DNA of 63,354 nucleotides, filler included, from Octopus bimaculoides (taxonomy: Eukaryota): NCBI RefSeq assembly GCF_001194135.2. It is 5 parts of 4 records of this genome, joined end to end, with 100 filler letters (N's around TTAATTAATTAA, not from the genome) between each part and the next. Parts side by side here need not be neighbours in the genome. Positions count along the whole stretch, not along the records: positions 61,728 to 63,354 come from NC_068996.1; 4 more parts are not named here. One strand, given 5' to 3'. Below the pieces are notes generated by a model. It searched no databases. It was not told the DNA's origin and was given only the letters and a program-made list of their open reading frames with translations. This document shows, piece by piece, positions 61,728 to 63,354 of this stretch; position 1 is the first letter of the stretch, and each line of letters starts with the position of its first letter. The translations under genes and the position numbers were made by a program.

Positions 61728-62028
61728 CATCCACCTGTTCTCCCCCCCATCTAATAGTTCCTAGTTTGACGAAGGCAGCCTAATCGCTCTCCGTATACGC
61801 TTCTCTCAACCTCCGTTCGATGTTCTCCGCATTTAACCTCTCTTCCTCGTCCATTTCTAAATACAGGGTCAGGGCGCTCCCTTCCAAGTATAGTGCCATG
61901 AGACTCGCCACATCACTTAGTCCTTGTAGCTTGGCAACGAGCCTAATTTTTCGCATCCAAGCCATCACATCTCCTTCGCCATTAAAAGGCCTGATCACAT
62001 CGCTGGCGATTCTAATCTTGGCTGCCAT
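61728..62028 (-). pseudogene. gag: Gypsy-like gag N-terminus (disrupted, truncated by scaffold join)
   Basis: MAAKIRIASDVIRPFNGEGDVMAWMRKIRLVAKLQGLSDVASLMALYLEGSALTLYLEMDEEERLNAENIERRLREAY has the PFxG..DV.AW..K..L / LYLEG.AL..Y pattern of Ty3/Gypsy capsid; stop or frameshift near 61780. Confidence 0.8.
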
Positions 62029-62047
62029 CACGGCGAATTTCTACACG

Positions 62048-62063
62048 TGGTGCTGAAATAGCT
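62048..62063 (-). promoter_or_regulatory. Putative non-canonical primer-binding site AGCTATTTCAGC-ACCA
   Basis: Immediately follows the LTR terminal CA; 11/12 complementary to the conserved metazoan tRNA-Phe 5' end GCCGAAATAGCT. Confidence 0.6.
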
Positions 62064-62404
62064 TGTGGTGTATGCGTGTGAGTAGATGTAAATGCTTACC
62101 TCGGTTTTCCTTTCGTCAACTGCGAGTCTGTCTTGCGGTATCCAATCCTTGAAGCTTGCCCCGACCCAAAGAACACTAGGAATAGCAGCTGCTTCTCCCA
62201 AACCTAGACCGTCGCTTAACACGTCTTGTCCTGACCACGACCCTGTTCGAAAAAGGCACGAATCCCGATCGAGGCTTTTTCCTCTGCCCTTTTTCCTCTT
62301 CCGGTCAACTCGCCCTTCCGGTCAACTCACCCTTCCGGTCAACTTGCGCTTCCGGTCAACGCGCCCTTCTGGTCAGCCTCCCCAGACACTGACGTCATAC
62401 CACA
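62064..62404 (-). mobile_element. 5' LTR (341 bp) of the Gypsy-like element
   Basis: On the gag strand it starts TGTGGT and ends ACCACA (perfect 6-bp terminal inverted repeat, TG...CA), 35 nt upstream of the gag ATG. Confidence 0.8.
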
Positions 62405-63235
62405 AAATAAACCTGGAGAAAGCTTTTGATAGTCTCTCACTCTGTTATCTGGTGGTTTGTAAAGAAATTAGGTGTAGCTGAATTGTTTGTTAGAGCTGTA
62501 AAAGCCATGAATAGGGATGCTGTCAGGTAGATGAATGTTGGTCATATGTACAGTGATGAATTAAGTGTAGAAGTAAGAGTTCACCAGGGATCAGTTCTTA
62601 GTCCCTTCTTATTCATCATAGTCCTCCAGGCCATAACAGAAGAATTTAAGACTGGATGCTTGTAGGAACTATTTACTATATGCTGATGACCTTGCTCTTA
62701 TTGAAGAATCTGTAGCAGAACAGGAAAAGAAATTTTAGGTATAGAAGCAAAACCTGGAATCAGAGGGTCTTAAAGTTAACCTAGCAAAGACTTAAAGTTG
62801 TGAATAAGACTGTCTACCCATCAGATAAAAGGCCCTGCTCAAAATGCAATGAAGACATTGGAAAGAATTTCATTTGATAAGAAGTGCAGTAGAATCACAG
62901 CTCAGTTAACAGAGAAAGTAGTCTTTGTATGTGGCAGATGTGTATGAACAATAAGCACAGGAATTAGATTTTCTCAAAAGCCCAGGAGGCTTCTTAGCTG
63001 TAAATAGTTTCTGTTATGGAAGAGGGTGTTTTGAAAGTATGATTGCTAGAATCAGTATAGGACAGAGAAAGACCAGAGAGCTTAATAACTCTGTTGGCAA
63101 CAAAAGGGCTCTATTTCAGATTGAAAAGCAGATGGTATGATGCTTGTGTACAAATGGCTGTGCTCCATGGTTATGAGACTTGGGGTCTGAATGCAGAAGA
63201 CATGTCAAGACTGACAAGGAATGTGAAACTCTGAG
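62405..63235 (+). mobile_element. RTE-clade reverse transcriptase fragment (decayed)
   Basis: LEKAFD...VHQGSVLSPFLFIIVLQAITEEFKTGC..YADDLALI...GLKVNLAKT. Confidence 0.9.
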
Positions 63236-63279
63236 TAATAGTTTTTGTGATGTCTTTGCAGCTTTATTAATAATGTATG

Positions 63280-63354
<75 letters not shown>

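Follow-up and report, generated by a model that had tools for sequence, protein, structure and literature searches.

Layout of the octopus element

The window analysed here is a stretch of 63,354 nucleotides (nt), filler included, joined from parts of the Octopus bimaculoides assembly GCF_001194135.2. Its last part (positions 61,728 to 63,354, from NC_068996.1) holds, on the minus strand, the 5' end of a long terminal repeat (LTR) retrotransposon whose LTR is followed directly by a 12-nt block, a putative primer-binding site complementary to the 5' end of a host tRNA. The 5' LTR (341 bp, TGTGGT...ACCACA) occupies 62404..62064 (-) and the predicted primer-binding site, AGCTATTTCAGC, 62063..62052 (-), the same slot in which the block stands in 58 distinct junctions from relatives. 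The bases ACCA at 62051..62048 (-) come next, then a short leader with a CACGTG palindrome (62047..62029, -), and then the N-terminal part of gag (62028..61728, -; ATG at 62028..62026), which is clipped by the edge of the piece. Read directly on the minus strand, the order is ...CATACACCACA / AGCTATTTCAGC / ACCA / CGTGTAGAAATTCGCCGTG / ATGGCAGCC, the element opening with TGTGGTATGACGTCAG and the gag region with ATGGCAGCCAAG.

The gag ATG lies 35 nt past the LTR end, in agreement with the original prediction. As the piece contains a single LTR, its ends rest on homology and on the LTR pairs and target duplications of relatives, which back the boundary. The LTR start is homologous to the starts in the relatives L088 and L091 (TGTGGG(G/T)ATGAG), with unrelated flanks, and the LTR end likewise matches the relatives, L088 and L091 reading ...TACA / A(G/A)(C/T)TATTT at the junction. 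The gag frame is interrupted by an in-frame TAG at 61782..61780 and is then open to the piece edge. The copy is therefore a dead one, and the window has the 5' end of this copy of a compact (~4.2 kb), retrovirus-like LTR retrotransposon.

No TGG-type site is present between the window LTR and gag. The reverse complement of the window 12-mer, GCTGAAATAGCT, is identical at 11 of 12 positions to nt 1-12 of tRNA-Phe, GCCGAAATAGCT. The human tRNA-Phe start is GCCGAAATAGCTCAGTTGGGAGA (a qPCR primer in PMC2175372; PMC10505166), and the Drosophila start, taken from a probe, agrees with it (PMC7038984); against both tRNAs, the predicted 11/12 match with nt 12 at the LTR end is correct. A match of at least 11/12 to one preset 12-mer has a chance probability of ~2e-6. 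The real weight lies in the conservation over 58 independent junctions.

The single mismatch had been attributed to a tRNA isoform with U at position 3. The closest relatives of the window copy point to another origin. Their junctions read ACA / AACTATTTTGGC / ACTT in L088 and L089, ACA / AGTTATTTCCAC / ACTC in L091 and ACA / AGCTATTTCGGC / TCGG in L090, and the plus-strand T at 62054 of the window is a C in the family form, i.e. a CpG-to-TpG change. AGCTATTTCAGC is therefore a Phe type that has decayed in a dead copy, the family form being AGCTATTTCGGC, the exact 12/12 complement of tRNA-Phe nt 1-12.

Relatives and complete elements

The gag N-terminus has 12 short homologs (P0001-P0012, 49-63% identity), and in the contigs of gag homologs (L001-L003) the order ...ACTACA / AGCTATCCCGGC / stands immediately ahead of gag. 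The pol of these relatives has homologs of ~950 amino acids that number in the hundreds; Aplysia, Argonauta, Petrolisthes, Oratosquilla and Palaemon are among the hosts that are named. Another 80 loci came from metagenome contigs scanned with a profile. From these relatives in molluscs, crustaceans and metagenomes we compiled 58 distinct LTR/leader junctions.

Six elements, those of Aplysia, Argonauta, Petrolisthes, Oratosquilla and Palaemon and one from a metagenome contig, are complete at 4.1-4.6 kb. The two LTRs of each are 97.8-100% identical, and the elements are bounded by 5-bp target duplications (Aplysia GATCA, Argonauta TCAGT, Petrolisthes TAAAC, Oratosquilla TTTAT, L003 ATTAC, L002 GCTTC). 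As defined by these pairs and duplications, the LTR end exactly abuts the 12-mer in 6/6. The relatives also carry a G-rich tract before the 3' LTR, which together with the LTR pairs and 5-bp duplications is general for LTR retrotransposons, and their full gag of ~237 amino acids has two CCHC knuckles. In Petrolisthes (L085 5700-9912) and Argonauta (L086 4625-9031) the LTRs are 100% identical and both gag and pol are intact. Therefore, the family is active now or recently was.

The Argonauta LTR (L086 4969-4987) ends in ...GATCAAG instead of ...ACA; AGCTATTTCGGC still abuts it, and the TCAGT duplication is intact.

A conserved block at the LTR junction

A 12-nt block stands directly 3' of the LTR end in 58/58 junctions. 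Its pattern, AGCTA followed by four variable bases and GGC, is found in 54/58; AGCTA at +1..+5 is present in 57/58, GGC occupies +10..+12, and +6..+9 vary, +8 and +9 the most. Across the 58 junctions, the ACA at -3..-1 and the positions +1..+12 carry 1.3-2.0 bits of information, except +8/+9 (1.7-2.0 bits is also given for the inside of the block), and at +13 to +16 the information falls to the background level of 0.11-0.28 bits, no position from +13 on exceeding 0.3 bits. The original prediction had proposed conservation of the 12-16 nt after the LTR as a check: the 12 nt are conserved, and bases 13-16 are not. The relatives' leaders are only 0-60 nt long, with the gag ATG often 0-5 nt after the block and in several cases directly abutting it, where a second binding site would have no space. 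As predicted, no TGG-type site follows the LTR in any relative, just as in the window leader. A canonical site for the 3' end of tRNA-Phe was rejected as a candidate, since its complement was not found anywhere in the mollusc elements.

The blocks fall into a few discrete 12-mers, which we give here as their complements. The commonest is GCCTAGATAGCT (14 junctions), followed by GCCGAAATAGCT, which is tRNA-Phe nt 1-12 (11 junctions), GCCGCGATAGCT (10), GCCGTGATAGCT (7), GCCGGGATAGCT (5), GCCCGGATAGCT, which is tRNA-Lys3 nt 1-12 (2), and GCCGAGGTAGCT (2). A single junction has GCCCGGCTAGCT, which matches tRNA-Lys(CUU), and further types occur at one junction each, among them GCCTCGGTAGCG in L065. 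Copies with a 12/12 Phe type are those of Aplysia and Argonauta and the loci L006, L015, L016, L025, L034, L049, L051, L056, L070 and L090. On the element strand, AGCTATTTCGGC is exact against metazoan tRNA-Phe and AGCTATCCGGGC against tRNA-Lys(UUU), and AGCTAGCCGGGC against tRNA-Lys(CUU). L065 has CGCTA instead of AGCTA, which pairs with UAGCG, a D-stem start as in elongator tRNA-Met; the change is a covariation at base +1. The tRNA-Lys3 5' end used for the matching is confirmed in PMC2175372.

The variation within the block follows the tRNA, in that its invariant part corresponds to conserved tRNA positions (G1-C2-C3 and U8-U12) and its variable part to variable positions of the acceptor strand. 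AGCTA complements U8-U12 and differs from the T-stem, which lies ahead of the 3' acceptor strand; the block thus mirrors the tRNA 5' end in antisense and is no sense relic of the 3' end.

12-mer types and host tRNAs

In a rough neighbour-joining (NJ) tree of the region from reverse transcriptase (RT) to RNase H, identical 12-mers recur in separate clades, and the Oratosquilla element clusters with the Argonauta element yet has the crustacean 12-mer type. All three malacostracan hosts (3/3) have AGCTATCTAGGC and both mollusc hosts (2/2) the Phe type; GCCUAGAUAGCU is the type of the three crustaceans. The types track the host group. Such recurrence together with host tracking is to be expected from an external template, i.e. 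a host RNA. Drosophila tRNA-Phe starts with GCCGAAA (PMC7038984), so the crustacean type probably stands for a different tRNA or for a lineage-specific isodecoder. No tRNA genes were called by ARAGORN in the fetched loci, and a literature look-up for the unmatched 12-mer types found only tRNA-Phe.

Class of the element

The pol open reading frames of L003, L085 and L086 have, by Pfam, the domain order protease (PR), RT, RNase H and integrase (IN), which matches the order in Metaviridae. RVT_1 is weak or faint; RNase_H (PF00075)/RVT_3 and DUF7047 are present, and the proteases are retropepsin-like. Pfam gave no match in pol to the gypsy-type families RT_RNaseH and RT_RNaseH_2, and none to the BEL/Pao families (Peptidase_A17, DUF1759-type gag). 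When the pol profile was compared with PDB sequences, the integrases of mouse mammary tumour virus (MMTV), human immunodeficiency virus (HIV) and human T-lymphotropic virus (HTLV), as well as HIV-2 RT, ranked above Ty3, with the MMTV integrase closest. An AlphaFold model of pol (m612bcdbbe6bb; mean predicted confidence, pLDDT, 77) has its best fold matches in foamy virus PR-RT and HIV-1 RT p66. Over PR-RT-RNase H these matches have E-values of ~1e-24 and template-modelling (TM) scores of 0.33-0.58, at an identity of only 12-14%. DUF7047, which is mentioned in none of the literature searched, seems to be the RT connection domain.

The label "Gypsy-like", given to the element originally, is therefore imprecise, as the Pfam, PDB sequence and fold comparisons all place pol nearer to the retroviral order PR-RT-connection-RNase H-IN than to Ty3. 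By these comparisons, the lineage is an unclassified retrovirus-like LTR retrotransposon. Retroviral pol (foamy virus, HIV-1, the MMTV integrase) comes nearest in the fold of PR-RT, in the integrase profile and in an RNase H of the PF00075/RVT_3 kind behind a connection-like domain; the present elements differ from retroviruses in being ~4.2 kb long, lacking env, residing in molluscs and crustaceans, and sharing only 12-14% RT identity with them.

Proposed priming mechanism

We propose that the block primes reverse transcription from nt 1-12 of a host tRNA that is cut after annealing, probably by the RNase H of the element, and we put the probability of this reading at about 0.75. The 12-mer would pair with tRNA nt 1-12, that is, with the whole 5' acceptor strand plus U8-A9-G10-C11-U12, the tRNA being tRNA-Phe(GAA) for the window copy and its mollusc relatives. 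Because the LTR (U5) ends exactly opposite nt 12, the 3'-OH of the primer would have to lie at nt 12; minus-strand DNA would start there, the primer being a 12-nt 5' fragment of the tRNA. Such a primer calls for a cut in the D-stem, since the full-length tRNA has no such 3' end. The cut would separate nt 12 from nt 13, where the duplex of tRNA and template ends, and would most likely be made by the element's own RNase H. An RNase H domain does lie behind the connection-like DUF7047, and we suppose that it is the cutting enzyme. Copying of the full 12-nt primer into plus-strand strong-stop DNA may then reset the site in each cycle. With such resetting, young or live copies would be expected to carry exact tRNA complements and to switch among few discrete 12-mers. 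The position, length and conservation of the block, its complementarity to tRNA and the absence of other candidate sites are read directly from the junctions; that it primes, and where and by what the tRNA is cut, is what we would deduce from them.

Several points weigh against this mechanism. Trimming of 2 nt by the integrase would place the primer end at nt 10, although nt 12 is favoured because L065 covaries at +1. We know of no cellular source for a D-stem cut at nt 12/13. The tree behind the recurrence of 12-mers is a rough one. The common types whose complements are GCCTAGA-, GCCGCGA-, GCCGTGA- and GCCGGGA-TAGCT are without a matched host tRNA, and the crustacean type is unlike the GCCGAAA start of Drosophila tRNA-Phe cited above. 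In addition, 14-mers of this kind open tRNA-Phe, tRNA-Thr and tRNA-Ile genes in phage and bacterial contigs (IMG/VR), which speaks for tRNA-likeness only and is silent on the hosts.

Four other explanations of the block deserve comparison. In self-priming of the Tf1/sushi type, the element's transcript folds back with its own first 11-12 nt on the site, and these are cut off as the primer. Such a mechanism would suit a site that is short (12 nt, compared with 11 in Tf1) and has no TGG start, and elements of this type range from fungi to vertebrates (PMC4600332). The window LTR, however, has no complement of the 12-mer at ≤3 mismatches, and a search for GCTGAAATAGCT elsewhere in the piece at ≤3 mismatches returned nothing above chance. 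In the 700 nt upstream of the block, the best match has 4-5 mismatches in ~50/54 loci, which is the level of shuffled sequence, with L071 (1 mismatch at -327) and L070 (2 mismatches at -651) as isolated outliers; the complement of the own 12-mer is also absent from five whole elements. Self-priming would also leave unaccounted for the identity of the 12-mers with tRNA 5' ends and the constancy of AGCTA alongside fully diverged LTRs. With the LTR, upstream and whole-element searches at chance level, we reject self-priming, which the original prediction had likewise disfavoured, as extremely improbable. The same prediction had seen in the last 11 nt, TTTCAGC-ACCA, a mimic of the acceptor-CCA strand, copying the tRNA 3' strand plus ACCA. 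The window indeed has ACCA after the block, and +13 is A in 29/58 junctions. The closest relatives have ACTT, ACTC and TCGG in its place, however, and +14..+16 are at background. Whatever complements a 5' acceptor strand is bound to be identical to the 3' strand, so that ACCA is the sole independent evidence for the mimic, at a chance of ~1/256. From the family comparison we regard the ACCA of the window as non-conserved and coincidental, and the mimic as scarcely credible.

If the likeness to tRNA were coincidental, the block could be some other cis element, such as a translation start context or a packaging signal. In favour of this, and likewise at the expense of the proposed mechanism, 4/5 of the commonest 12-mer types have no match to a known host tRNA. 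It is at odds with the exact 12/12 matches to three metazoan tRNAs that are well known, with a block bounded precisely by tRNA nt 1 on one side and by the LTR on the other, and with invariant bases that coincide with the conserved part of the tRNA (nt 8-12, G1-C2-C3) while the variable ones fall in the acceptor part. Chance is excluded by this family-wide pattern, and we consider a coincidence very unlikely. The block might also bind a tRNA 5' end, or a fragment made by the host, without a cut by the element's RNase H, a host nuclease acting instead or the pairing serving in packaging or annealing. This is backed by the same sequence evidence as the proposed mechanism, and cells produce 5' tRNA fragments of 14-16 nt by cleavage in the D-loop. 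Those fragments end in the D-loop rather than at nt 12, and their unpaired 3' bases would block extension, whereas the primer 3' end must sit at the boundary of LTR and site; furthermore, the 0-60 nt leaders offer no other candidate primer site. Although it deserves some weight, we hold this explanation to be improbable. Priming from the tRNA 5' end, as opposed to self-priming, is well supported by the comparison of sequences; each refuting condition named in the original prediction (a TGG site or another LTR boundary in relatives, lack of conservation, self-priming) was decided in favour of that prediction, and the conservation over 58 junctions bears out the originally predicted assignment of the 12 nt after the LTR as a putative tRNA 5'-end-complementary primer-binding site.

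Comparison with known priming systems

Priming is among the steps that define LTR retroelements, and the known solutions to it are few: the tRNA 3' end, an internal fragment of initiator tRNA-Met (tRNA-iMet), and self-priming. In retroviruses, Ty1, Ty3 and most LTR retrotransposons, as proposed for the present elements, a host tRNA anneals directly downstream of the 5' LTR, and related elements have sites that switch between tRNAs. The canonical site starts with TGG and pairs with the last 8-18 nt of the tRNA including CCA, so that the natural 3'-OH primes. Here, in contrast, nt 1-12 would be paired and a new 3'-OH would have to be made inside the tRNA; instead of a TGG site 0-5 nt after the LTR, 57/58 junctions have AGCTA.

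An internal part of tRNA-iMet reportedly primes copia, 1731 and Ty5 (Kikuchi et al. 1986; Ke et al. 1999). These elements resemble the proposed scheme in that their primer comes from the 5' part of a tRNA and owes its 3' end to cleavage, not to the natural CCA. They differ in that their sites are complementary to the anticodon stem-loop (~nt 25-39) of tRNA-iMet, with a primer of ~39 nt, whereas the complementarity found here is to nt 1-12 of Phe- or Lys-type tRNAs, with a predicted primer of 12 nt. Pairing with nt 1-12 and ending at tRNA nt 1 thus sets the block apart from both 3'-end and anticodon-stem priming, a distinction already drawn in the original prediction.

The closest mechanistic likeness is to Tf1, Tf2, Tj1 and sushi, which share the short site of 11-12 nt without TGG and have, as proposed here, a primer from an RNA 5' terminus and a cut at the end of the duplex. 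In Tf1 the primer is 11 nt long: the 5'-terminal 11 nt of the mRNA pair with the site, and cleavage of the RNA duplex by the RNase H domain releases them (PMC4600332). The Tf1 primer is thus the element's own mRNA, encoded in the LTR, whereas here it would be the 5' end of a host tRNA, acting in trans; moreover, the Tf1 group are chromoviruses (Ty3/gypsy), and the present elements have a retrovirus-like pol.

If the proposal is correct, it would amount to a trans version of Tf1 self-priming, and to an additional priming solution that needs a specific D-stem cut of a tRNA by RNase H or a host nuclease. To our knowledge, a site that complements the tRNA 5' end has not been described before, and no such description was found in the literature searched, which largely left out subscription journals. 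We lean, with some reservation, towards the broader view that these elements form a widespread, compact, retrovirus-like lineage, active in places to this day, in molluscs, crustaceans and other aquatic or soil eukaryotes, and that it cuts its own 12-nt primer from the 5' end of tRNAs (Phe, Lys and others), which would be a third class of tRNA-derived primer next to 3' ends and anticodon-stem fragments. Annotation tools look for tRNA 3' ends only and would miss such sites, which may be the reason why such elements appear to have no primer-binding site. The elements would also be blind to silencing by 3' tRNA-derived fragments aimed at canonical sites, and 5' fragments would recognise them. Experiments are feasible, since a crab and an octopod have copies whose LTRs are identical and whose genes are intact.

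Further features of the window and the relatives

Five tandem 17-bp repeats, each holding TTGACCGGAAG on the element strand, lie in the U3-like upstream part of the window LTR (62298..62382, -) and contain a GGAA core that is ETS-like. A perfect palindrome, TGACGTCA, resembling a cAMP response element, is found at 62390-62397, 7 nt from the LTR start, and L019 has a similar AATGACGTCAGTGG upstream of its 12-mer site.

Just upstream of the 3' LTR, the relatives have a palindrome GATCT(N2)AGATC and the G-rich tract, e.g. ttgatcttgagatcacgggggcg|TGT (L084 8406-8435, L085 9609-9638, L087 8485-8514 and L003 11550-11579). The palindrome may form a hairpin beside the plus-strand primer.

Among the ~4-kb metagenome contigs, many are circularly permuted (pol-LTR-site-gag) or have two copies of the site ~4.02 kb apart, as in L014 (521 and 4538) and L024 (1228 and 5251); L007, L008, L012, L022 and L027 also belong here. 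This arrangement fits assembly with collapsed LTRs, tandem arrays or one-LTR circles.

In L048 (1833-1950), a degenerate tRNA-like sequence of ~100 nt with a T-run, which starts with GACCTCGTGGCG like tRNA-Trp, stands right after the 12-mer. This insertion has a GCGGCC duplication on its flanks and resembles a tRNA-derived short interspersed nuclear element; neither ARAGORN nor Rfam made a call on it.

A decayed fragment of a non-LTR reverse transcriptase, from a long interspersed nuclear element (LINE), with stops and frameshifts (...VRVHQGSVLSPFLFIIVLQAITEEF...), lies at 62426-63230 (+) of the window. It directly adjoins the LTR start, so that the LTR element sits in or beside an older LINE. 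A (TG)n/(TA)n microsatellite at 63266-63354 runs up to the piece end, and the contigs of the close relatives L088 and L089 are likewise flanked by (CA)n-rich sequence.
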